DNA of 64,000 nucleotides from Cyanophora paradoxa CCMP329 (Eukaryota; Plantae; Glaucophyta): positions 1 to 64,000 of the forward strand of contig QPMI01000085.1 in the NCBI GenBank assembly GCA_004431415.1. Direction: 5' to 3'. The notes beneath the pieces are model-generated. The model saw only the letters and a program-made list of their open reading frames with translations, was not told the DNA's origin and searched no databases. Below are positions 13,259-60,056 of this stretch, piece after piece; the first letter of the stretch is position 1, and every line of letters starts with the position of its first letter. Made by a program: the position numbers and the translations under genes.

Positions 13259-14661
13259 ATGGCCGGACGCGGTATCTCTGTGCTCGTCACGTCGTCTTTC
13301 GCCACGCGCTGCCGCCCGCCGGCAGTCGACCTTGCGCTACTTGCCGCCCGGCGGATCCCAGCTCCTTTGCGGATGCAGTCGCTGAGCGGGATCGGAGCAC
13401 CGCAGCGCGTGCATGCGGTCAGTACGTTCTGTTGAGAGCGGATCGATGTCCTGCGCTGACTCCGCGAAGCGCATTGGCGCGCCGCTTGGTCGGCGCAGCT
13501 TCGCGGGCGGCAGCGGCGGCATTCCCACGCCCGTTGATGCAGTGGAGGCATTCATTCGTGCAGGGCACGAAGTTGTGGGCCTTCCCTGGTGGCTCGCCAT
13601 CGCGGGTCTGGCGCTGTTTCATCTACATTGCTTTTCGCCACAGCATACCGTTTGTCGATGGTGATTTCGAAATGCGATCGCAGGGTCCGCTTTGGCTGTC
13701 CGGCTCGCATTTCTTCCACTCGTTCTGTACAGCAGGAGGGTTTCAGCACGTTATTCGTCCCTGAAACCACATAGGCAGCTGGCTTTTGCACTAGCTACAT
13801 CCTCGGCAAAGGAGAAAAGGTTTGCAGTGTTGAAGCATCCCAACCCGGATCTGAAATGCTGCGAATCATTCAGAGAACAGTATCTGGATTACGTTCGAGC
13901 CGTCTGGATTCAGTGCTCATTGTTCGATTCAAACCCCCTGAAGGCCTTGGTCGCCCCCCTTGCTATGATCCCCGTCTTCATAAGCTTTGCTTGGGCGATG
14001 AGGCGGATGGCGATTCCTGGCTCTGGGATGGAATTGGGTGGCATTCTCTGGTTCGAGGACCTTACACTCCCAGATGTTCACTTTCCTGGAATCATGTCAC
14101 TGGCGATCATCAATTGTGCAATTGTTCTTGCCAACCTTGTGGTGAGCAGCATCGTTCCTGAGATACCGTTCAGGAGTTGTTTTTGTACTCATAGAACGAC
14201 CAGGTATCATTTCGAACCACCGATCGCTCACTTCTATATGTGAAAGACATTTGCATGGTCCTAGTTGTTGCTATGACATGCTTCACTGCACAGCTTCCTC
14301 AGGTGCGATTCCTCCCATTATCAGAACATGATTTTGCATCGTATATGAAACGCCATGCAGGGATTTTTCATGTATTGGATACCATCTTCACTATTTGCAC
14401 TGGTCACCACACTGCTTACCAGGCATCCATTGATGCAGGAAAGGTGAACTCAAAATTACTGTTTGAGCGATTTAAATCTCATTGAGCTTCACTGCAAGGT
14501 TGCTTCGGAGTGCATGGGCAGGGCGAAAGCTGCCTCCACCCGTGCAGGACTTCTTTGAAGATGTTGCTCGGCAGCCAACAGAACATGCTGCAAGGGCTTC
14601 GGGAGGAGATGGTCCCCTTATACCCTCGGAGCCACAAAAACCGAAGGTACCCGTGCAGTGA
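13259..14661 (+). CDS. Oxa1/COX18 (YidC family) membrane insertase
   Basis: GLPWWLAIAG, PVFISFAWAMRRM, GGILWFEDLTLPD, FFMYWIPSS motifs; N-terminus resembles a mitochondrial presequence. Confidence 0.9.
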
Positions 14662-15236
14662 GAGGTTCGCACGCTTGCACACGGGTGCTCATCATTTGCT
14701 GAAGCTTTGATCTGCTGCTCACCCTTCGCCCGTGCAGGCGCTCCTCTGAAGGGAGGCTCGTGATTTCGATTTCGATCTCGGAGCTTTTCGATTTCGATCT
14801 CGGAGCTTTTCGATTTCGATCTCGGAGCTTTTCGATTTCAATCTGACCCCTTAGCGCCCCTGGTGCAGGCTGACTCCATGTGGGGTTCCCAGAGCCCGTA
14901 GGGGCTCCCACCACCGCCCCAAGACGACCCCTGCCGCGACAAGACGTGATGCCGCACTCGCCGTGCGGGCACCTAGGCCTGTAGCGAGCTACAGTGCTCG
15001 TAGGGAGGCGTTTGATATAAGGGCCGGTCCGGACTCTATGATTGCTAGGGCGCGCGGTGTGGAAAGGGCTGTGGGGCAAGGGGAAGCAGTTTGGAGAAGG
15101 GGGCCCCGGATCGGGAGGGGGGCACAACATGGAATTCGAAATCTCAATTGCAAGCTAGGGTGGATTCGGTACGTAATTAAAGTTGCATTTGCGCGAATTG
15201 CATGCATATGTGGCACAATTGCATTTAATATTTAAG

Positions 15237-15314
15237 CTCTTTCTAAGCGACGGGCGCGCCGGACCTCCTACCTACAGCGCTTTAACTGTACCCGTGCTGT
15301 TTGGGTGAGAGCGT
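15237..15314 (-). mobile_element. Truncated Fanzor right end (omegaRNA 3' part), 78 bp
   Basis: Matches 34178-34255 except one substitution; starts at the same CTCTTTCTAAG terminus. Confidence 0.9.
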
Positions 15315-17287: not shown

Positions 17288-17807
17288 CTCTTTCTAAGCT
17301 ACGGGCGCGCCGGACCTCCTACCTACAGCGCTTTAACTGTACCCGTGCTGTTTGGGTGAGAGCGTAACCCGCAGGGACTGGTGCCCTGATGGAGAAAAGG
17401 GGATGGGAGCCTAGCCTAGCTACGAGCCGAGCAGGCGCTTCGCGTCCACGCCCGTGCCGTAGCGGATGAAGATGCTCCTGCAAGAGTACGATTACGATTG
17501 CGATCGGGCGGCGCTGGGAGGGCGAGCCGGCCCTAGGCCTAGACGGAAAATTACGCCGTGGCTGGGCCGTGTCGGGACTAGGCGGGGGGAGCAGCGATTG
17601 TGTATAGGCGTGTATAGACACAACACGCACCGCGCGGCGCCGCCGTCGCGGTCCGCCCGGAAGCCGCACCCGGGGCGGCACTCGAAGACCCTCTTCGAGC
17701 CGAGCCCGTAGTTGATCTTGCCGCACAGGCCAAAATCTCCAGGCCAAATTAGATGGGGGGGGAGGGGAAGGCTCAGATGAGCATGTCTTCTCGTCAGCGG
17801 GCAGACG
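17288..17807 (-). mobile_element. Non-autonomous, internally deleted Fanzor element with both ends
   Basis: 17288-17727 near-identical to 34178-34617 (omegaRNA plus last Fanzor codons); 17739-17807 shared with 56932-57001; followed by CTTAAGC. Confidence 0.9.
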
Positions 17808-17939
17808 CTTAAGCGACTCATCCCCCTGTATGGGCGACTCATAGGAATGCAGCCCTCGCTGTTGCCGACCTGGCCCCGATCGCGAAGCTTGCGAGGGGAG
17901 TGAGCATCATGGCATTTGGACACATACTAAAAACGCAAG

Positions 17940-32889: not shown

Positions 32890-33564
32890 GAAACTAATCG
32901 GTCCAGTGCCCCCCGGGGGGCGTCTCAAATGATGCAATGCGAGAGAGCGCTGGAGCTTGAGGAAAGATTTTTATTTTTGAAGGGCTGTAATTTGAAGCCT
33001 TCACAAGCCTTTGAGCGGGTTGGACTTCGATTTCGATCCAATTACGCTTCAGGTGGACGTCGGTGGTGATAGGACGTGGAGGGGGGTTGGGAGTTCTTGT
33101 ACGAGTGATGTGCACGTGGAGCCTCGGAAGGTACGAGGTACGTATAAGGTTTGAAATCGATATCGATATCGATGAGCGTGCCCGCATGCCGTGTGCAGCA
33201 CGTATGTATGTGCCCGCCGGGCCACACAGCGGGTGCCACGGACCACAGTGGGGCACTGTGGCAGCCACGATGCATTTTCAGATCTAGAATGCGTTTAAAA
33301 AAAATTTTCTGCCGGCGGCAGCCAAGGCATAGGCATAACCCCTGTACATGTTGCGTTCTGAATTCGAAGCTGGCAGTTGCAATTAATGTTGCTGCTCAGC
33401 CTGGCAGTGCTGCTGTGCGATTTATTATAATTGGGGGATCATCATGGCATCATGGCATGACCATCGGACCTTCGAACTTGCAATTGGTGCACGTGCTCAT
33501 TGCCAAGGCCGGCCGCGCGCCGCGCCGGCGCCACGGTGCATGCACACTAGCTATATAGCATGCA

Positions 33565-33821
33565 TACCGTAATGCAGAATATTAAGGTCTGTACTTTATT
33601 ATGTCGTCCCGAAATTATGTCGCCTAAAACTTGACAAAACGACATAATTTGGGGACGTCATAATGGGGCGCGCAATGAGGTATCCCCCAAATTTTACCGC
33701 CAAGCCTGAAAAGTTCATGTCGACATACTATGATAATTTGGGGGCGTCATATTTCGCATAGAGAAGGCTCGGGTTTTAAAACGACATAAATTTGCATGAC
33801 ATAATATTGTGTGTTACGGTA
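33565..33821. mobile_element. MITE, copy 2
   Basis: Same TACCGTAATGCAGAATATTAAGGTCTG start and TTACGGTA end as 6885-7122. Confidence 0.8.
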
Positions 33822-34177
33822 ATGGCAGGGTACTATCAACTGCATTATAATTCTCACGGCTTGATGGTAACTACTATAAACAGCAGGCCACGTTCCCCTG
33901 CTAGGCAAGTGCAATGCATATGTAGTAGGCACACAAGGCTTCCTTCTAGATTCCCCCAGGATCCCCTTGGCAATTAATTTGCGCGATGAATAATTGTTGC
34001 AAGCGCATTTTAAATTTCGATTGACCGTCATGGCCCTGGCGCTCATTATGATCAATCGAGCGTCCGCGAGGGACCATGATTGAGATGCCGAAGATGAGGG
34101 TGAAAATCGGGCAAGCGCACCACATGTACAGTTAACTAACACTTGCCACCCAGGTCTAGTGTGCGACATGGGAAGCG

Positions 34178-34381
34178 CTCTTTCTAAGCTACGGGCGCGC
34201 CGGACCTCCTACCTACAGCGCTTTAACTGTACCCGTGCTGTTTGGGTGAGAGCGTAACCCGCAGGGACTGGTGCCCTGATGGAGAAAAGGGGATGGGAGC
34301 CTAGCCTAGCTACGAGCCGAGCAGGCGCTTCGCGTCCACGCCCGTGCCGTAGCGGATGAAGATGCTCCTGCAAGAGTACGA
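34178..34381 (-). ncRNA. Predicted Fanzor omegaRNA scaffold (element right end); the guide would be read from flank below 34178
   Basis: Directly 3' of the Fanzor stop; conserved in multiple copies with a sharp common boundary; complementary segments GCTACGGGCG / CGCCCGT..CCGTAGC, TACAG/CTGTA, CAGGG/CCCTG. Confidence 0.75.
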
Positions 34382-37300
34382 TTACGATCGCGATCGGGCG
34401 GCGCTGGGAGGGCGAGCCGGCCCTAGGCCTAGACGGAAAATTACGCCGTGGCTGGGCCGTGTCGGGACTAGGCGGGGGGAGCAGCGATTGTGTATAGGCG
34501 TGTATAGACACAACACGCACCGCGCGGCGCCGCCGTCGCGGTCCGCCCGGAAGCCGCACCCGGGGCGGCACTCGAAGACCCTCTTCGAGCCGAGCCCGTA
34601 GTTGATCTTGCCGCACACCCCGCACGTCTTCGAGGTCCAGGCCTCGCAGACGAGCTGGAGCGTGCACGGCGGGTCCTCGTCCTTGGGGTGCCGCCGGACG
34701 GCGTGCTGCATGAGCTGCCGGAACCTGCGCAAAATAAGCATCAAGACCGCGTGGCAGAGGGGGTCGAAACGCAAGACCAGCGTACTCGTAGTGGCGGCAG
34801 TCGAGAGCCTGACGCGCCACCCACGGGAGCATCGCCCGCCCCTTGCGGGCGACCTGCAGGGGAAAGTGAGCGGAATTCCCGGGGCGGGCGCGCCGACAGA
34901 GCTCGCCAACCATCTGGCTGGTGCGGAACTCCGGCGCAATGACCATCCGAGCGTGCCCCGCGAGAAAACTACGTCGCGCGCCGTGCGTGGTTACAAAGAG
35001 TACAGGATTCAGTGATCGGGGCCGCGCACCGAACCCAGCGCCGAATGACCTCCGTCGCCTGGTTGCGCATGCGCGCGTAGCGCCGACGCCCCAGCGCCCG
35101 GAGGTGCCGGCGCGTGCCGTGGCGCGCTGCGCAGAGGGCTCAGCCGCGGAGGGCGCCAAAAAGACCGAAGGGCGGGGGCGCACGGTAGGTCCGCTCTGGC
35201 TTGCCGTAGTAGAGGCTGGGGCAGGGGCAGGCGGGCCGCGGCTCGGCGCGCAAGCCTCTTCTGAAGGTCGGGGGGGCCGACGGCGGCGGCTGCTCGGCGG
35301 CGTGCAGGCCCCTCTCGCCAGGCGCCAGACTCTTCGCCTGTAGCTCCAGCTTCTTCGCCCAGTAGGCCGCCTCCCGTCTCGCCCGATCGGCATCGTGCTG
35401 CCGCATGCGTTCCTCCCTGCGCTCCTTCGCCGCCTCGGAGCCGCGCGGGGGGCGCGGGGGCGGCGGAACGAGGGGCGGCGAGCGGCGCCGCAGAAACCCC
35501 CGGGGGCCCCTGTTGGGCTCCGAGACGCGAGAGGCCCCCCGCGGCGGGGCCCGTGCAGGGGGCGGCGGGGCGGCGGCAGCGGCGGCAGCAAGCGAGGCAC
35601 GAAAATCTTCGAGCGTGCCCTTGCGGGAGTGCGCCCGGTAGCATTTTCCGCACAGCCCTGCTCGCGCACTATCGTCAAAACTGCATCGTAGGCAGGACGA
35701 GGAAAAAGGATCGAGCACCATGGGAATGGTGCGGGGCCTCCTTGTGCGGGCAGTTCACGTTCTTCGAAAATAGCGTTCTCGCCTCCCGCTCGAGGGCCTC
35801 CTTCTCCCCCGCCCGCACAGCGGCCTGCCGGCTCTTCCGCCGCTTCTTCCGCCCCCTCCGCTGCTTGTTACGCCGCCGCCTCCGCCCGGGAGACTGCCAA
35901 CCTCGCACGCCACCACTGCGCCGCCGTCGCTGCTGCTGCTGCTGCAGCTGCTGCTGCTCCCACACGCGGGCATCATCGGAGGCAGCAGGCTGTTGCCGGT
36001 GCTGATGCTGCCGCTGCTGCCGCCGGAGCCGCCGCAGCGCCACACCCGCCTCCTTCGACGACTTGGCCATCGCCTGCTCCGCCCGGCGCAGCTGAGCGTA
36101 CCGCCTGCGGTGCTCCTCGGGCGCAACCTGGGATACGGCGGGACCGTCAATTAACCGAGCCCCATACGGCAGCAACGAGGAGAACCACAGGGAGAGAACC
36201 TTGACGATGATGCCAAGGCTTGGGACGAAGGCCGTCCAGACGGTCTTCACGCCGGGGTCGATGACGACGAGGTCCCACTTCAGCCGGCGGGCCATCTCGT
36301 CCGCAAGAGCCCTCACCGCCCCCGTGCGGTGGCACGTCTTGCTCGCGGCTCGCGTCTCGTTCACGTCGCGGGGGACGCAGAATCTGCGGGCAGCGTCACG
36401 GACGGGGGGAGGCGAAACCGGCGAACCGTGAATAATTCAAAAGGGGGGCGCACCGAATGCCCCCGTCGGGCCCCATCGCGAGCCTCGAGTCGTGGGGGAT
36501 CTTGCCGGGGAGCTTCTTGTAGTCGTGCACCCGCACCATCGTCTCGTCCCTGAGGACCGCCCAGTGCGGCCGCGTGGAGTACTTGCCGGTGCCCGCGCCG
36601 TTGTAGCTCGTCGCTGGAACGATGATGGACAGCCGCCGCGCCTTGACGGAGACCCTCGCCCTGTGGCGACGGGGTGAATCGATAGCGACGGCCCGGGCCA
36701 AAAGGGGACGCGCACTGGAGGCCCTCAAGCGGGTTCCGCCGGGCGACCTGGTTGAGGACCGCGGAGAGCGCCTCCTCGGCTGCCACCGACAGGGTCTTGC
36801 CAAAGACCCTCCACGTCGGGACGATGTCGGCGCACCCCAGCAGACTCCGCTGCGCCGGGTCGAGGCCGTACAGCCAGCGCTCGCGGATGTCGCGCATCGC
36901 CTCGGGCGCGAGGGGCAGCGGCCTCTTCTCCGCCTCTGCGCGCGGCAGCTGCCCCCCCCCCTGGCACCCCTCCCACTCCTGAAGGCACCCGCTTGGTACG
37001 AGGCGCGAGCGACAAGGCGTACCACACAAGGGAGGCGCACCAGGTCCTCGATCTCGTCATCGGAAGGCTGGTTGACGTAGATCGTGCGGATCAACCCCTG
37101 GAGATCACCGCGCCGCCTCTTCAGCATGCCACCGCGCATGCCCGCCGTCCCCATTACCAGCTTGTTCAGCTGCGCGGCCCCCAGCGCGTGAGAGGGAGCG
37201 CCCGAGGCGGGAGCCAGAGGCGAGCACCTCGGGCTCGTGGATGCAGCCGTTCACCACGGCGTCGTACACGAACGCGGCCGCGTTCATCTCGCCCTTGATC

Positions 37301-38079
37301 GCCTCCAGCAGGGGCGGGGCGACGTAGGTGAGGTGGTACACGTCGGTGGCCAGCTGCTCGTTCGAATCTCGCGCCGGCTGGCCGCGGAGGCCGCGGACGC
37401 CGACGAGGTTCGGCTTGGCGGGCGGCGCCGGCACGTCGTCCTTGTCCGGCCCCTCGCTCCCCGCCGCCCCCGCGGCCGCTGCCCCCCCCCGACGTCAGCA
37501 TCAAAACGTTTTCTGACGCCAGCACGGTCTTGTCGAGCTGCAAGGAAATCACAGAAACGCACCCGTCTTCCGCGCGTAGTCCGAGTAGCCCTCGTAGCCG
37601 TGCTTCTTCAGCTTGGCCATGTAGCGCCCCACCTCCTCCGAGGCTCCTTGTCCATCTGCCAGAACTCGACGTTCACCGGCATGCCCTTGGCCTTGGAGAG
37701 GAGCCGCTCGGCCTCCTCGGACAGCTCCGCCACCTCCGCCCAGCTCAGCTTCTTCATCCCGCTCTCGTCCGGCACGGGCGGGATCTGGAGACCGCGTCAG
37801 CGCCTCGAGAAATAGACCCGGCGACGGGGTCATCGCGTGCAGCATACCATCTCGGAGATGCCCCTGGCGCGGTCGTTCTTGGCGCGGTCGCGCGGGCCGT
37901 CGGCGTCGGCGTCCCAGTACTTGACGAGGGCGCCCGACGCCGCCTGGCGGAGCTCGGAGCCGTAGCCCGTGCGCCACACGATGCCCGCGAAGTGGCGACG
38001 GACCTCGCGCACGCCGAACCCCCTTCCAAAAAAACAAAAGGAGGGATCTCAGCCGCGCGGAGGAAGGGGCGCATCGGAG

Positions 38080-38110
<31 letters not shown>

Positions 38111-38808
38111 CGCACAGCCTGAACATCTCGTAGGTCATGAGCCGGGCGATCGGCTCTGCGGCGTGCTCGAGGCGGCAGCGGGGGCAGAACCACCACTTGC
38201 TCCTCGGCCGCTGCGCCTTCTTCTTCTTCTTCTGCCTCTTCTTCTTCTTCTTCTTCTTCTTCTTCTTCTCCTTCTTCTCCGCATCTCCGCCCTGCGCGGG
38301 GGGAAATCAGAGACCCGTGCACGCCCACCGCCCCGTGCGGCTACCTCCTGCTCAGCCCCCTCCTCCTCATCGCTCTCCTCGTCGCCGGCCCCTCCCGCCC
38401 ACTTCATCGCCTCCGCGTCGTCCTCCACCAGCTTGGCGGCAGCCTCGAGGACCTCGCCCAGCGCTTCCTGCACGCCGAGGGGCGCGTGAGCACTCGAAAC
38501 AAGGCGCCTAAGCGGTGAAGGGGCGAGGAAACCTGGACGCGAGTGACGAGGGGCCGGGGGTTGCCGCAGGCCTCGGCGAGGATCGGGTTGAAGCGGCCGA
38601 GGCCTTTGGCCTCGAGCCCCCCGAACAGCAGCGCGTCGCCGGCGCTCTGGTAGCGCGCGCCGGTGTAGAGGTACGCCGGGAAGTTCAGCCCCGCCCGAAG
38701 CGTATGGGCTTGCTCCGCTAAGTGACCGTCGGCATCGTGGACCATGAGGAATGCGCGATCGTGGGTCATGGCCGCGGCGAGGGCCGACTTGAACCCCGTG
38801 CGCCTCAC
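34382..38808 (-). CDS. Fanzor (TnpB-like RNA-guided nuclease), Fanzor2/IS607-type, about 15 introns, 5'-truncated, one apparent frameshift near 37643
   Basis: TnpB-like N-helix (NAAAFVYDAVV), RuvC-I VVIDPGVKT, APEFRTSQMV, RHYEFRQLM, VCEAWTSKTCGVCG...FECRPGCGFRADRDGGAAR. Confidence 0.9.
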
Positions 38809-38913
38809 CTGGAACAGATGTCGGTCGGGCGGGGGGGAGAGGAGGGGAGAGGAGGGGGGGGGGGGGGGGGGAGGGGGCAGGGGGGGGGGTGCGGGGGGGG
38901 GGGGGGGGGGGGG

Positions 38914-39914
38914 GCAGGACGAAAGTTGGACGAAAGTTGGACGAAAGTCGGACGAAAGTTGGACGAAAGTCGGACGAAAGTTGGACGAAAGTCGGACGAA
39001 AGTTGGACGCAAGTCGGACGAAAGTCGGACGAAAGTTGGACGAAAGTTGGACGAAAGTCGGACGAAAGTTGGGCGAAAGTTTCTGATTCCGATCGTAACC
39101 GCAACTCTGATTCCGATCGTAATCGCAATGTGCCGTCGTAATCGCAATGTGATTCCGATCGTAACCGCAACTCTGATTCCGATCGTAATTCTGATCTACT
39201 TGATCTAGATCTAGATTTGGACATGGTCTTTGGTTCTTTCTGAGCTTCCTTGCTCGCCCAGTAGGGCACACCTCACACCTTCTTTGGAAGCCCTTTATTC
39301 TCACACCTGCAGAACCAAAAAAATCTATATCTAGCTAACAGGCACGAAAGAAGGCCTCTCGCGTTCTCCACTCTTTACACGCGGGTGGTGTACCCGTACA
39401 CGCGGGGGGGGGGGGGGGCAGGACGAAAGTTGGACGAAAGTTGGACGAAAGTTGGACGAAAGTTGGACGAAAGTCGGACGAAAGTTGGACGAAAGTCGGA
39501 CGAAAGTTGGACGAAAGTCGGACGAAAGTTGGACGCAAGTCGGACGAAAGTCGGACGAAAGTTGGACGAAAGTCGGACGAAAGTTGGGCGAAAGTTTCTG
39601 ATTCCGATCGTAACCGCAACTCTGATTCCGATCGTAATCGCAATGTGCCGTCGTAATCGCAATGTGATTCCGATCGTAACCGCAACTCTGATTCCGATCG
39701 TAATTCTGATCTACTTGATCTAGATCTAGATTTGGACATGGTCTTTGGTTCTTTCTGAGCTTCCTTGCTCGCCCAGTAGGGCACACCTCACACCTTCTTT
39801 GGAAGCCCTTTATTCTCACACCTGCAGAACCAAAAAAATCTATATCTAGCTAACAGGCACGAAAGAAGGCCTCTCGCGTTCTCCACTCTTTACACGCGGG
39901 TGGTGTACCCGTAC
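38914..39914. repeat. About 500-bp tandem duplication containing an 11-bp minisatellite (GGACGAAAGTY), CTGATTCCGATCGTAA repeats and the last exon/3' UTR of the 7-TM gene
   Basis: 38914-39399 is near-identical to 39419-39914. Confidence 0.9.
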
Positions 39915-41525
39915 CTGCGGGGAATCAGTATCCGATTGTGCGCAACCAGGATCACATTGACTCACGAGTCGTAGACGGGCACGAGGGTCTTGTCAATGGC
40001 GGTCGCGTACGGGAAGGAGCCGACGGCGTAGATGACAACAGAGACGATCGAGAGGATGAGCGCAACGGTGAGGGGGGTGTAGCCTGCGGATAAGCGTTAG
40101 ACGGACAGTACGTGCGTTAAGCAAGGGACGCACTGCCGACGGGGCAGGTCTTGCCAAGCTGGCAGGAGACGGACAGGGCAATCGCGGCAATGCCGAAGAT
40201 GGCGCCAACGAAGATGATGAGCACCCACAGCTGCAAGCACGTCAGATCGAAGTGGGGCGGGATGAAAGACGAAGCAAGCGCACGAAGGGGCGGGCAGTCT
40301 CGCGCTTAGCGGTGCACATGCGGATCACGGTGGCGAGCAGGACGAAGACCTGGGCGAAGAGCGCGAGCCTGTGGTGCACAATCAGGCACTGGGACGAGGC
40401 ACGGACTCGTCCTGCGCAATCAGCGCACCAGGCGGAGGTGCCGAGGGCGCCCGAGAAGAACACAATGTACACGACGAGGGCGATGGCCTGCGCCGCGGCG
40501 TGAGTGCGGGACAGGGCGGGAGAAGCAGAAATCCGGGCACGATGATGATGCCGACGACAATCAGGGCCGAGAGCACAGTGCCGACGGTCAGGAGGACGGT
40601 GCCGGCGTAGCCAAGAACGAAGGTCGAAGCGATGACCGAGAACACGTTGGCTGCGGAAGCCAGTCAGCATCTCCACCTCTTCAACAGGACGAGGCTCGAA
40701 CCCGCGGTCATGGTGTTCGACCAGTCGGAGTTCACGAGGCCTGGAAAAAAGCGTCAAGGCACGCGTTTTCGAGCGATTCGCGATGCTGCTGCAGTGCACA
40801 CCCTTCGCGGTGTACTGCGGGTAGTGATCTGCATGACGAGGTTCAGCTGTGCACGCCCATGATTGATTGGACACCCCACGCACCGATAGCATAGCCCAGA
40901 GCGATCAGGGAAAGGCAGCCGAACAGGCTGGCAAACCCGAACTGCATGAGGTGCGCCTTGGCCTGCGCGGAGGCAACGGCCGATTCAGAAGGCGGCCGCG
41001 TGGATGATTCGCCGGGTGGCCCCGATTTCACGTTTCGCGTTCGAAAACACGCCGGAAAACGCATTTCGGGGTGCCTAGGGCATTCTAGAGCCATCGCGGA
41101 CGCTATCCAGAGTTGTCCGCGAACATAACGCCCTCCCGAGACAATCAACGCATCCGCCAGCGAAAGCCCCACGGGCAACGCAGATACGCACGCTGTACTG
41201 GCCGACGGCGGCATTGCGCTTGTAGATCGAGTACCACTTGAAGGCCGCAACCGCCGAGATGACGGCGTTAATAGCCGCACCCGTGTAGGCGGCGTAAACC
41301 TCCGAGCTGGCTGTGGAGGAAACGCGACAGGGCGTTAGTCGAGGCTGATGAGCCGTCGGAATACCGCCAGGGCCATCCGCCCGCCCCGCTAGGTGAGACT
41401 AACGGAAATTTCTAACAGCCGCCGGGAAAATGACCCGAACGGGCGCCGCGGTCGAACAGACTCCATCGAAACCTAGCCCAGTCGCAGAGACGCTCACCCG
41501 TGGTGGCAATCGACGGCGCCGACAT
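39889..41525 (-). CDS. Hypothetical multi-pass (about 7 TM) membrane protein
   Basis: Spliced MSAPSIATTASSEVYAAYTGAAINAVISAV...VFSVIASTFVLGYAG...YTPLTVALILSIVSVVIYAVG...YGYTTRV*; GT-AG introns. Confidence 0.75.
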
Positions 41526-41885
41526 TGTAGGTTGTTAGTACTGAACCCCTCGACTGAGCACTGACTTCTGGGTACCCGTTTTAACGATTTCAAAAAAGAA
41601 CAAAGGCTAGATCAACGAAGGCCACGTCGGCTCCACGTGAAGCGATGGAGGAGTCGCAGCTCTCGCAGCGGCGGCGCGGCGATGCGGCGGGACAAGCGCG
41701 TCGTCGTCATCGCCCCCGCGGCGTTGCGGGCTGGCTTACGACGACCGCGAGCTTCGCCTGCGGGGGGAGCAGCTAGCGCTGAAGCTCGTGGTGGCGAGCT
41801 AGAACACGCAGGACGCAGGCGCTGCAGCAGCGCCGGCGACGCTGAAGCGGGAGGAGCGGAAGCGGAAGTGGACGGAGGGCATCGA

Positions 41886-42094
41886 TCGTGCACATCACGT
41901 CGGCGTCTCACACGCGCTTGCCGTGCAGCTCATCCGAAGAGAAAATGGCCCCGACTGCTGTGCACGCCGAGACTCCCGCTGAGGGTGCGATCCTGAGGTC
42001 TCGTTGCTAGCGCATCGCCGAGCTCCGAGCGCAGCCCAGGAGCTGGCCGTCGTCTACGCGGCGCTCATCCTCCACGATGATGGCATCACCGTGA
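41886..42094 (+). pseudogene. Captured copy of RPLP1 5' UTR, exon 1, intron 1 and exon 2, lying between two diverged copies of a repeat (41631-41870, 42111-42460)
   Basis: Near-identical reverse complement of 12698-12906. Confidence 0.92.
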
Positions 42095-45000
42095 TCGATA
42101 TCGATATCGTTCCACGTGAAGCGATGGCGTCGGCACAGCTCTCGCCGCGGCAGCGCGGCGATGCGGCGGGACACGGGCGTCGACGCCATCGAGCACTGGG
42201 GGGACCCCGCCGCCCTCCAGCGCGATGAGACGTCGTGCGCAAGCTAGAGGTAGCGCTAGAGCTGTTGCAGATCTCAACTTTGACATACTGCAGCGACGAG
42301 ATCCCGCGGCGCTGCAGACTGGGCTACGACGACCGCGAGCGTCGCCCGCGGGGGGAGCAGCTAGCGCTGAAGTTGGTGTTCGCGACCTAGAGCATACAGG
42401 ACGCAGGTGCTGCAGCAGCGACGGCGCCGCTGAAGCGGGAGGAGCGGAAGCGGAAGTGGGAGGAGCGGAAGAGGAAATGGGCTGAAGCTGGAGCAGTTGC
42501 TGGAGCAGGATCGCAAGCGGGAGAATTGGGAAGTGGAAGCGGCCACCGAGCGAGGATCCGCCAGCTGGCAGTTTGCGCAAGGTCAACGACCAGTGGGCGG
42601 CAGCATGTGGCGAAAGTCGACAAAAGAGAGCATGTGCGGCCGTGCTTGGCTGCGTTCCCTCTCTGAGACAGACCGCAAGAGTACAGACAGACCGTCGCCG
42701 CGTGCAGCCTTTCTCTGCCGCAGTGACCTTCCTCGGCACCTCCGCCGAGCCTAGGCCCTAGTAGGCCGGCATTACTGGAAGCTCAGATTCAAAAGGGTTT
42801 AAAGTGCCTAAGCTAGTTCACCGATCCAAGGGTTTAAAGAGCCTCGGACTCCGGGAGCCGCTGAGCTGCTGAGCATGCCGCAGCATGAGAGGCTAGCTAG
42901 CTATATAGCTAGCTTTTTCACAAAGCCCATATCAAGGGCGGTGGCGAGTGTATTTGTTCAGTGACATCGTACGCACTACCGGTTCGGACTGGGCCGAACT
43001 CTGGGTCAGAGCATAACCTGAGGCCGGAACACAGGGATAGGCGCCTCGACGCTACAGCTGAGCGTTTCTCTTGTGGGGGGGAAGCGTGGGGAGGGGGTCG
43101 TCGTCGTGAGTGTACGTACCAGATGCTGGGGTCGTGGCGCCGAGGGGGGCCAATTTTTTATCAGGCAGGGGTAGAGGGGTGGGGGGGAGGGGAGGGGCGG
43201 CGCGGGCGGTGGTAGCGGGCGCGCCCCCTTATTTTTATTGCGTGTGGGGCGCGGGGTATTTTGTGGGCCTGGTTGGGGGTGTTATCGAGGGTGCCGCGGG
43301 GGCGGGCGGTGGCGGGCGGGGTGGCCGCCCTAGTGTGGTCGTAGAAAAGAGGGGCGTGGTGGGGGTTTTAGGCCGTGGGGCTAGGTTATCGCTAGCGTCT
43401 GGGCCGTGGGCTTGCCTAGGGGGTGGGGCTGGCCCGGAGGAGGGCAAGGCTTTATGCGAGATCGGGGTAAGAGCCTCGGAGGGTGTCATTGCTTCATAAA
43501 GCTATCTAACTCAGAGAGGGAGGCGGCGGGCTTTCACAGGGCCCCCACCGTCGGTAGTCATGCTACCACAATTGCAAGTTGTGAAGAAAAGAAGAGAGAA
43601 AGAAAGCGGGGGCCGAAAGGGCGAGAGGGCCGAGGCCATTGGGGCCAAACGTAAAAGAGAGGGAGAGTTTATGCTGCCGCGTTGTCGGCGGCGGCCGCCC
43701 GGCGTCCGGCCAGGAGGGCCTCCATGGCGTCGCCGCGGGGCCCCCGAGGGCCGAGGTGAGCTCGGCGAGCATGCGCTGGGCCGCCTGGTAGTTGGTGAGC
43801 GGGATGGTGGCCGGCCCGGGGCCGGAGGCGGGGGCCGGGCCGGGGCGGGCGCGGGGCGGCGGCCGGCGCCGGGGCGGCGCGGCGGCGACGGCGGCGGCGG
43901 CGGCGGCGGCGACGGCGGCGGCGGCGGCGGCGGCGGCCGCAGCGGCAGCGGTGGCGGCGTTGGCGGCCGCGGCGGGTGTGGCTACGGCGCGCGGCTGCGG
44001 CCGCCGCGGCCGCCCCCTATAGCTATATATATATATATGCAAATGATCATGAGCTCAAGGGCCTATATAGCTAGCTATGCGCTTGTACGCATGCAGTATA
44101 CGTATATATATACAGTACGCGGACCCTGTCCTAGTTCTCTTGTTAAACGTTTAGACTCTGAGAGATTTGCATAATGGCTGCTACAGGCCTGTGCACTGGC
44201 ATGCAAGTTCGAGCTCGAGCGAGGGTGCCCAGCTCCCTCGTGCAGTTAAAATCTTTCGAATTGCTCCACTAGGGGGCCAAGCTTTTAAGGGCATCCCAAA
44301 GCAGACGGGGGCCGACTTATTCGTGTGTATATCGATATCGCAGGCGCCCCTCAAGCTCGCCGACCGTATAGGAGGCTTGCATCGGGGGGGTGTCAAGGGG
44401 ACCAGTCGCCTCGTGGGAGAGGGGCCGGCGGGCATGAGGGGCGGGCGGCGCGGGGCCTGGCAGCGGCCGCCGGGGACGCACTGCCCGCCGCTGGGAAGTC
44501 TTCGACGGAGCCCGGGGATTCCGGGTCCGATAGTGGGCGAGCGCCATCAGGCTCGGACCCCACGAGGGCGGGTCCCGGCGAGGCCGGGCCCTGAGGCAGG
44601 CGAGCGCCGTCTGGCTCAGACCCCGCGGTGGCAGCTGGGCGAGCGTTTGAGTGCTCATGCGCCCGGGGATACGTAGGGGTCGTCGGCTTGCATGCCGGCG
44701 CCAGCGGCGCCAGCAGAGGCGGCATCACAGCTCGGGGCTCTGTCCACCGCCGCGTCTTGGGGCGCTTGCTCCGCGTCCCGCCAGAGGCCTGCGAGCGTCG
44801 CGCACGCGTCACGGAGAGCCAAGTGAGCGGGGGGACGCGGCCCCGTGGTTCTTGAGTGTCGTGCTGGCGCGGGCGGCCCCGCGCACGGGCCGCCGGCGCC
44901 GGCGTGCTCTGTGGCCGTACGGGGCCGGCGTCAGAGTTCATAGAGGAGGGGCGCGGGCGGAGGGTGTGAGCGACGGGCGCGGGGAGGGTCCCGCATGATC

Positions 45001-56207: not shown

Positions 56208-57001
56208 CTCTTTCTAAGCTACGGGCGCGCCGGACCTCCTACCTACAGCGCTTTAACTGTACCCGTGCTGTTTGGGTGAGAGCGTAACCCGCAGGGACTG
56301 GTGCCCTGATGGAGAAAAGGGGATGGGAGCCTAGCCTAGCTACGAGCCGAGCAGGCGCTTCGCGTCCACGCCCGTGCCGTAGCGGATGAAGATGCTCCTG
56401 CAAGAGTACGATTACGATTGCGATCGGGCGGCGCTGGGAGGGCGAGCCCGCCCTAGACGGAAAATAACGCCGTGGCTGGGCCGTGTCGGGACTAGGCGTG
56501 GCATCCCTGCATGGCGTTTCATATACGATGCAAAATCATGTTCTGATAATGGGAGGAATCGCACCTGAGGAAGCTGTGCAGTGAAGCATGTCATAGCAAC
56601 AACTAGGACCATGCAAATGTCTTTCACATATAGAAGTGAGCGATCGGTGGTTCGAAATGATACCTGGTCGTTCTATGAGTACAAAAACAACTCCTGAACG
56701 GTATCTCAGGAACGATGCTGCTCACCACAAGGTTGGCAAGAACAATTGCACAATTGATGATCGCCAGTGACATGATTCCAGGAAAGTGAACATCTGGGAG
56801 TGTAAGGTCCTCGAACCAGAGAATGCCACCCAATTCCATCCCAGAGCCCTCAAGATCCCTGTGAGTGGTGCGTCACTCGTTCCCGATTTGATTCCAGTGG
56901 TGGGCGAGGGCCCAGGGGCGGAGAGTTCATGCCAGGCCAAAATTAGATGGGGGGGGAGGGGAAGGCTCAGATGAGCATGTCTTCTCGTCAGCGGGCAGAC
57001 G
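56208..57001 (-). mobile_element. Non-autonomous Fanzor element carrying a 346-bp piece of the Oxa1 gene
   Basis: 56208-56498 = Fanzor right end; 56503-56848 = reverse complement of 14019-14364; 56932-57001 = left end shared with 17739-17807; followed by CTTAAGC. Confidence 0.92.
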
Positions 57002-57012
57002 CTTAAGCATAT

Positions 57013-59468: not shown

Positions 59469-60056
59469 TCATCGGGAGGTCATTGGACTTTTGAGACTTT
59501 TTTGGCAAGATGCAGCCCGCACTCTTTGAGCGTCATGATTGGCCGCAGTTGTAGTTGTACCAGCGCTGCGTTCGGTGGAGGCTGACTGCGACCTTAGGGT
59601 CATCAGGTCATCTTCCGCACAGATGTGTGTGCGGGCTATAGAATGACCCTTATCCCGATGGCTATGAATGACCCTGGCTGGCAATCGATGCCTCACCTCA
59701 CTGAACATTATTTCGCTGTGGTCCGCCCGAACCTTGAGAGACTGCTTATCGCCCTGGACAGTCTTTACTCTTTCTAAGCTACGGGCGCGCCGGACCTCCT
59801 ACCTACAGCGCTTTAACTGTACCCGTGCTGTTTGGGTGAGAGCGTAACCCGCAGGGACTGGTGCCCTGATGGAGAAAAGGGGATGGGAGCTAAACAGTCT
59901 TCGTTCTAAACCACCTCACTGAGTCAGGCCTGAGAAGGCTTTTGAACATGAACGAATTTCCCAGCCCATACATGCGATTCGCAAGTGCAAATACGACAAG
60001 TGCAGCGGCGTCTTTCCTTCCGAAGACTGCCTACAACTTCCGAGTTCCCGCATCAT
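59469..60056 (-). pseudogene. Small hypothetical gene whose exon is interrupted by a Fanzor end fragment
   Basis: Removing the insert and one ACAGTCTT copy restores an open frame (SPDSVRWFRTKTVQGDKQSLKVRADHSEIMFSE) bounded by GT/AG sites. Confidence 0.4.
59768..59890 (-). mobile_element. Truncated Fanzor right end, 123 bp
   Basis: Identical to 34178-34300; flanked by ACAGTCTT direct repeats. Confidence 0.92.

Follow-up and report, generated by a model that had tools for sequence, protein, structure and literature searches.

A 5'-truncated copy of an intron-rich Fanzor2-type gene family in the glaucophyte Cyanophora paradoxa, and dispersed copies of its right end

Results

Gene model and transcripts

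The DNA analysed here (the window) comprises 64,000 nt of Cyanophora paradoxa CCMP329, positions 1 to 64,000 of contig QPMI01000085.1, and opens with a TTAGGG telomere at 1-5600. On its minus strand, at 34310-38808, lies the remnant of a gene of the Fanzor2 type of RNA-guided nucleases, modelled from the sequence, contigs of sequencing runs and the public annotation. From 38808 to its stop codon at 34312-34310 the gene has 17 exons (38808-38533, 38467-38345, 38291-38116, 38022-37848, 37784-37563, 37478-37228, 37169-37041, 36978-36716, 36660-36454, 36383-36200, 36127-35719, 35657-35184, 35126-35030, 34968-34911, 34853-34786, 34724-34521 and 34367-34310) and 16 GT-AG introns, a density of about 4.7 introns per kb of coding sequence. 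The exons total about 3,370 nt for a protein of about 1,120 amino acids (aa), have a GC content at third codon positions of 0.84-1.00, contain no stop codon in phase and shift frame in exon 5 only. The introns are 53-93 nt long apart from intron 16 (34368-34520 in the gene model and run contigs), which at 153 nt is about twice the length of the others. An earlier reading of this DNA from its letters (the original prediction) had proposed about 15 minus-strand GT-AG introns and a protein of roughly 1,100 or more residues; the mode of splicing and the protein size agree with our model, and the intron count is corrected to 16. The locus is annotated as C. paradoxa tig00000342_g24202 (P0158 in our comparisons), a protein of 1,087 aa with the same 16 junctions and one extra intron, by which the annotation bypasses the frameshift in exon 5. 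Exons were searched individually, and whole-protein comparisons were made via P0158.

Among the joints listed, those for introns 5 and 8-16 (10 of the 16) are present in contigs of two runs that are probably of RNA and stem from separate studies, and intronless joints are absent from the contigs of both DNA runs. A chance or mis-spliced open reading frame is ruled out by the occurrence of the spliced joints in the RNA-type runs alone. Introns 1-4, 6 and 7 are predicted, with no RNA joint among those listed, and one low-depth RNA contig retains intron 6. The RNA contigs carry the substitutions S878N and Y918C, as does the annotated gene g6958 on tig00001085, and the simplest reading is that the transcripts come from this sister copy, with its frame open. 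RNA has therefore borne out the junctions of introns 5 and 8-16 through sister-copy alleles, and as such it validates the Fanzor2 family more than this locus. Within 34983-35377 the window also differs at several fixed positions from contigs of all four runs, in sets that vary by run, which suggests two or more long copies or errors in the assembly consensus.

The nuclease core

Every motif named in the original prediction was located in the exons: IDPG, APEFRTSQMV, HYEFRQL, CEAWTSKTC, a CxxC...CxxxC zinc finger and DRD. The RuvC-I DPG (36251-36259, catalytic Asp codon 36259-36257) is 100% conserved among 82 homologs of at least 350 aa (median 491 aa), and its exon 10 matches the homolog profile with an E-value of 4.6e-5. 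In RuvC-II (34911-34940) a Pro (34934-34932) replaces the canonical Glu, as in 96% of the homologs, and exon 16 encodes the shifted catalytic Glu (34645-34643), a C4 zinc finger and the RuvC-III Asp of DRD (34537-34535), a segment (34535-34645) identified with PF07282, the structure 9B0L and the homolog alignment. In P0158 these residues are Asp613 (in DPG, residues 613-615), Pro971, Glu1028 and Asp1064; their columns are 96-100% conserved in the 82 homologs, and Pro971 and Glu1028 also align with 9B0L. Exon 16 matches PF07282 at 1.9e-9, above the curated cut-off, with the zinc ribbon followed by RD, and its best match in the Protein Data Bank (PDB) is the mimivirus Fanzor2 9B0L, with no Fanzor1 structure among the matches listed. 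The homolog profile matches exons 9, 10 and 13-17, in order, and two homologs whose loci were fetched (L004, L005) sit in ordinary IS607 loci with TnpA overlapping TnpB. DPG, the lost RuvC-II Glu and the shifted Glu are published signatures of Fanzor and pro-Fanzor proteins (PMC10711439). On profile and motif tests, the accompanying quick tree having no Fanzor1 rows, the gene is of the Fanzor2/IS607-TnpB type with its catalytic triad (DPG, shifted Glu, DRD) intact, as the original prediction had it.

Upstream of this core the similarities are fainter. The likely start of the Fanzor2 core is an N-terminal FW...LWxP block at 37770-37930 (hhalign of three paralogs against 39 homologs, 40%, E 2.9e-4), and a weak match in the expected order (hhalign E 0.018) marks a likely WED-start/helix-turn-helix (HTH) segment in exon 6 at 37246-37341; the Pfam family HTH_OrfB_IS605 has no match in this protein. 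Searches of viral, metagenome and phage sequences for close relatives had no yield. In the quick tree P0158 forms one group (SH-aLRT 92) with three other C. paradoxa proteins, P0095 (1,449 aa), P0006 (1,839 aa) and P0031 (473 aa). Separately, P0009 / P0160, from a metagenome contig of 1,167 nt, are 303-336 aa long and join an IS607 TnpA (MerR HTH plus resolvase) to the zinc-finger end of TnpB, a fusion that probably arose by an internal deletion joining two genes.

Extra length and the front end

The protein is more than twice the usual size, the homolog median being 491 aa; a large size with long insertions had been predicted. The spacing from the RuvC-I Asp to the RuvC-II Pro is 358 aa against a homolog median of 92, and this spacing defines a Gln/Arg/Pro-rich insert of about 265 aa at 35190-36000, of low complexity, with a second basic cluster and a Cys/His motif (35752-35641) that weakly matches an HNH family in PHROG (E 0.04). 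The large size is due to this insert inside RuvC and to an N-terminal extension: the Fanzor2 N-terminal block seemingly begins in exon 4, which leaves at least 190 aa ahead of the core. The Lys-rich run noted in the original prediction is present at 38217-38276, following an acidic linker in exon 2, and by analogy with published Fanzors (PMC10530073) may function as a nuclear localisation signal (NLS).

Exon 1 probably encodes, at 38668-38793, the second (helix) half of an AP2/ERF-like DNA-binding domain, to which it fits better than to a serine recombinase; the first half would be missing because the copy is 5'-truncated. The AP2 profile was home-built from 113 metagenome domains, six of them checked with Pfam. 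Of the 17 exons, exon 1 matches it best (7.0 bits; 9 of 5000 shuffles), and the segment at the same place in the paralog P0006 scores higher still (residues 726-800; 12.4 bits, 0 of 5000 shuffles). With hhalign, exon 1 matches AP2 at 51% (E 1.5e-4) and every other exon at below 1%; the P0006 segment matches at 81%, and a two-sequence profile of exon 1 and the P0006 segment at 93% (E 2.5e-7). Against a 152-sequence IS607 TnpA profile the corresponding values are 2.6% for exon 1, 0.2% for the P0006 segment and 0.2% for both together.

A W-x-C-x2-C motif at 38175-38195, aligned with the paralogs P0095 and P0006, resembles the final third of a PHD finger that has been split, and WxCPxxRL together with the following block is common to both paralogs. 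By eye P0095 has the full C4-H-C3 PHD pattern, split by an insert, and this copy keeps the last WxCxxC alone; weak PHD matches were found in P0095 only (Pfam E 0.035, PDB E about 3). Word-based homolog searches with the N-terminal part had no yield. The annotation of P0006 (tig00021617_g22932) combines a ubiquitin hydrolase (E 2.7e-16), a CW zinc finger (E 3.4e-8), the AP2-like segment, a weak HRDC match and the Fanzor2 part. The literature searched held no report of a Fanzor from Cyanophora or glaucophytes and none of a Fanzor with PHD or AP2. Up to 9.6 introns per kb and NLSs have already been published for Fanzors (PMC10530073), and as such it is the size and the front-end domains, neither of them described in the literature searched, that are the unusual parts here.

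State of this copy

Two lesions prevent the locus from making the full protein, leaving at most a guide RNA or a truncated product. The original prediction had recognised the 5' truncation and had overlooked the second, also damaging lesion, a frameshift in exon 5 (37582-37668; seen in the window and in DNA contigs). Here the window is 8 nt longer than the RNA contigs of both runs, which are in frame; the DNA contigs agree with the window over exon 5 without gaps, and an assembly error was rejected on that ground. The truncation is indicated by exon 1 beginning mid-domain and by what lies upstream (38809-39922, minus strand, non-Fanzor), a C-rich tract followed by two tandem 510-bp units (38900-39922), a duplicated stretch that probably comprises the final exon of a host gene with its 3' end and bears 24-bp and 11-bp arrays. 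These units were also considered as lost upstream exons and rejected, neither AP2 nor TnpA matching them. A 24-bp repeat similar to their array precedes another tail copy elsewhere (P0002, tig00020554; tblastn E 0.003).

In two studies the depth of RNA contigs is about 10-fold lower upstream of about 37000 (36981-37006), where DNA depth is flat and the contigs are unbroken. This step may reflect an internal transcription start in intron 7; contigs can neither place RNA starts nor show small RNA.

The right end and its tail copies

Five copies in the window end at the same base (the equivalent of 34178) and extend inward by 78, 123, 294, 440 and 4,631 nt, the longest being the gene itself. The four others are 97-100% identical, in line with the original prediction that nearly identical end copies mark a probably recently active lineage, and all lie on the minus strand, an orientation that we do not regard as meaningful (p about 0.06). 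The 440-nt tail, with intron 16, is joined to a 77-nt segment (17814-17739; whole feature 17288-17814). The 294-nt tail is followed by 346 nt of captured DNA (56503-56848, identical to 14019-14364, inverted) and by the same 77-nt segment (57008-56932; whole feature 56208-57008), with a 10-bp duplication at 56871-56862 and 56208-56199. The 123-nt tail (59768-59890) is flanked by an 8-bp duplication, and for the 78-nt tail (15237-15314) no duplication was found. The chance of the 8- and 10-bp duplications is about 5e-4 each. The tail copies retain intron 16. Many more copies of the tail end lie elsewhere in the genome: in all four runs there are loose ends at 34177 where reads diverge into varied flanks, and in one DNA run (X11) contig depth steps down from the right end through roughly 18, 12, 9 and 5 to 1-3 times the depth of the body.

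The 77-nt segment, tied to two tails, comes after GCTTAAG and is a candidate left end, with AG then standing at either end of the element; one of these two tails contains the 10-bp duplication, which permits another reading of the left end. Between candidate left end and right end there is no match longer than 7 nt, and hence no terminal inverted repeats. TTTT is absent at the tail junctions, and a 152-sequence profile of IS607 TnpA has no match in the window.

A candidate omegaRNA scaffold of about 205 nt (34178-34385, minus strand), delimited by the fixed end and by its geometry relative to a published Fanzor2 (PMC11832414), would run from inside intron 16 to the right end, and the flank at 34163-34177 would, from the known Fanzor2 layout, serve as the guide. 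The omegaRNA, like nuclease activity itself, is inferred by analogy. The guide flank has no match with fewer than three mismatches elsewhere in the window; the right end has no Rfam match, and its folding energy is no better than that of shuffles. For ApmFz2, pairing of the terminal bases with a site near -192 has been described (PMC11832414). The sequence CUCUU at 34376-34372 (-198 to -194) is the sole complement of the last five bases of the element within 420 nt, lies within the acceptor tract of intron 16 and occurs in the acceptor of no other intron; a fold starting at 34385 pairs it with the end with a probability of about 0.8. In one RNA run an alternative acceptor keeps CUCUU (joint 34376-34521). 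If the guide RNA does begin inside the last intron, an mRNA with all its introns removed could not be its source. We regard this predicted overlap of guide RNA and intron 16 as a lead only.

Discussion

The locus is best explained as a 5'-truncated and frameshifted copy of a Cyanophora-specific Fanzor2 family, and we consider it likely that intact members of this family are RNA-guided DNases of 1,100-1,800 aa with eukaryotic additions. This reading follows from the gene structure, the spliced family transcript, the D-E-D triad, the presence of at least four related genes and tails that keep their introns. By analogy with Fanzor2 and IS607 TnpB, the enzyme would be directed to the empty insertion site by a right-end RNA of about 200 nt with about 15 nt of flank and would cut there; with a filled copy as the repair template, the element would be restored. 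The AP2-like and PHD-like front end may add DNA or chromatin binding, the guide RNA may start inside the last intron, and the tails may be made by DNA-level copying, assisted by an enzyme encoded outside the window, that sets out from the right end and terminates prematurely. A stronger version, in which an active giant Fanzor2 carries AP2/PHD-type readers, splicing decides between protein and guide, and the enzyme by its own cutting gives rise to hundreds of one-ended insertions that carry guides, with no dedicated transposase, seems to us possible and rather unlikely.

Several observations count against the preferred reading. Downstream of the third Asp, the Cyanophora family has Gly and Ser (or Gly) in place of two highly conserved Asn residues. 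The tree that groups the family is quick and its branches are long, and the contig depth by which the right end stands out is not equal to copy number. Neither AP2 nor a convincing PHD was found in this copy by Pfam or PDB searches; the seed pattern of our AP2 profile includes LNFP, which is present in exon 1 and biases the test in favour of AP2, and the pairwise similarity of exon 1 and the P0006 segment is not significant. AlphaFold models are unusable here, with a predicted confidence (pLDDT) of 37 for exon 1 and 49 for P0006:726-800, the latter model being a hairpin plus helix for which a fold search returned no useful match. The CUCUU pairing spans only 5 bp, was picked after the ApmFz2 paper and is lost when the fold is extended to 34420. 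No mobilising enzyme was found in the window.

The same front end could belong to a domesticated or nuclease-poor, RNA-guided regulator that reads chromatin via PHD/AP2-type domains, with the dispersed tails as its guide library. The zf-CW and ubiquitin hydrolase domains in the P0006 annotation, the replacement of the two Asn near RuvC-III and the transcription of the tails are consistent with such a regulator. However, the triad is intact, the copy is broken as expected of transposon decay, the five guides in the window have no match there, tail RNA is not enriched above tail DNA depth, and the front of P0006 may belong to a neighbouring gene, fused in by the annotation; we therefore consider a regulator improbable. 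If exon 1 were instead the remnant of an IS607 serine recombinase, the gene would encode a single transposase-nuclease. Homologs do adjoin TnpA in IS607, and a 26-residue stretch of exon 1 is in register with TnpA (hhalign 2.6%, E 0.018; 53 of 5000 shuffles), but the bit score against the 152-sequence TnpA profile is negative, the DRL motif is lost, and neither the window nor the three paralogs contain a TnpA match. AP2 fits better, and a paralog has its AP2-like domain at the same place. The fusion was rejected on these profile tests and is highly improbable.

A fixed 3' end, graded 5' loss and short duplications are typical of target-primed reverse transcription, and the tails show all three, with duplications of 8-10 bp. 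Retroposition, in which a host reverse transcriptase copies the unspliced right-end RNA to give 5' truncation and variable target duplications, would also draw on the existence of RNA contigs holding intron 16. Against this, poly(A) is absent, the copies stop at the element end and do not carry the guide flank of a donor, the 77-nt candidate left end is attached to two of the tails, and every copy keeps its introns, the DNA runs having no spliced joint though spliced RNA predominates; retroposition is in our view quite improbable. The step in RNA depth near 37000, present in both RNA runs over flat DNA, and an in-frame Met at 36897 would fit a working product of about 645 aa, transcribed from a start in intron 7, with the upstream exons as relics. 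Such a protein would lack the N-terminal block and the WED/HTH start needed for guide and target binding, and the main RNA contig, from which RNA starts cannot be placed, has sister-copy alleles. We give a short product very little credence.

The family resembles ApmFz2 and the pro-Fanzor TnpB of IS607 (9B0L; PMC10711439, PMC11832414) in DPG, Pro for Glu, the shifted Glu, the C4 finger, the RuvC-III Asp, the FW...LWxP block, the basic N-terminal run and a fixed right end with variable flank, and ApmFz2 also in the possible pairing, predicted here, between the terminal bases and a sequence some 195 nt further upstream. In contrast to ApmFz2 (520 aa), it is at least about 1,120 aa long, has 16 introns and carries the RuvC insert of about 265 aa and the AP2-like and PHD-like front; it also has no adjacent TnpA, and its end is AG rather than GG. 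IS607 elements have one dinucleotide at both ends and neither target duplications nor inverted repeats; here AG stands at the right end and, in two copies, next to the candidate left end, but two tails have duplications of 8-10 bp. The frequent 5' truncation, intact 3' ends, variable target duplications and foreign DNA captured at 5' junctions, together with an intron-containing Fanzor gene, recall CRe-1, 2 and 3 of Chlamydomonas reinhardtii (PMC3627910; CrFNuc, PMC10530073). Those elements are Fanzor1, of Helitron2 type and inserted after TTTT, in contrast to the Fanzor2 here, and neither Helitron-type ends nor a helicase were found for the Cyanophora Fanzor2 copies. Like Fanzor2* of molluscs and Chloropicon (PMC10711439), this is a Fanzor2 outside IS607 in a eukaryotic nuclear element; unlike these terminal-inverted-repeat transposons it is much larger, intron-rich and devoid of terminal inverted repeats. 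If the guide does start in intron 16, splicing and guide RNA would share sequence as in IS607-type IStrons (group I intron plus TnpB; PMC13565253). There the intron is self-splicing and spans the element; here it is spliceosomal and inside the nuclease gene, and the overlap is a prediction.

Fanzor2 has been described as the compact, TnpB-like and mostly viral branch. A nuclear lineage more than twice as large, interrupted by 16 introns and likely fitted with DNA- or chromatin-binding additions, shows that deep adaptation to eukaryotes is open to this branch as well, and supplies natural cases in which to see how a compact RNA-guided nuclease might gain access to chromatin. One-ended tails with target duplications are also seen, so far unexplained, with an unrelated class of Fanzor in Chlamydomonas, and a cultured alga now allows the question of whether Fanzor itself drives such insertions to be tested. 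For this defective copy, the added value includes the predicted sharing of sequence between the guide RNA and intron 16.

Other repeats of the window lie near these features. The captured 346 nt derives from a 4.3-kb unit at 10671-15010 with inverted arms of about 750 bp (95% complementary) and internal 22-bp arrays. A 212-bp sequence is present in inverted copies (99%) at 12698-12909 and 41883-42094, between diverged direct repeats at 41632-41877 and 42111-42465, an arrangement that probably reflects a further small mobile element. Another repeat, AT-rich and diverged, measures about 250 bp and occurs at 6884-7122 and 33564-33821, one copy lying 350 bp beyond the Fanzor right end.

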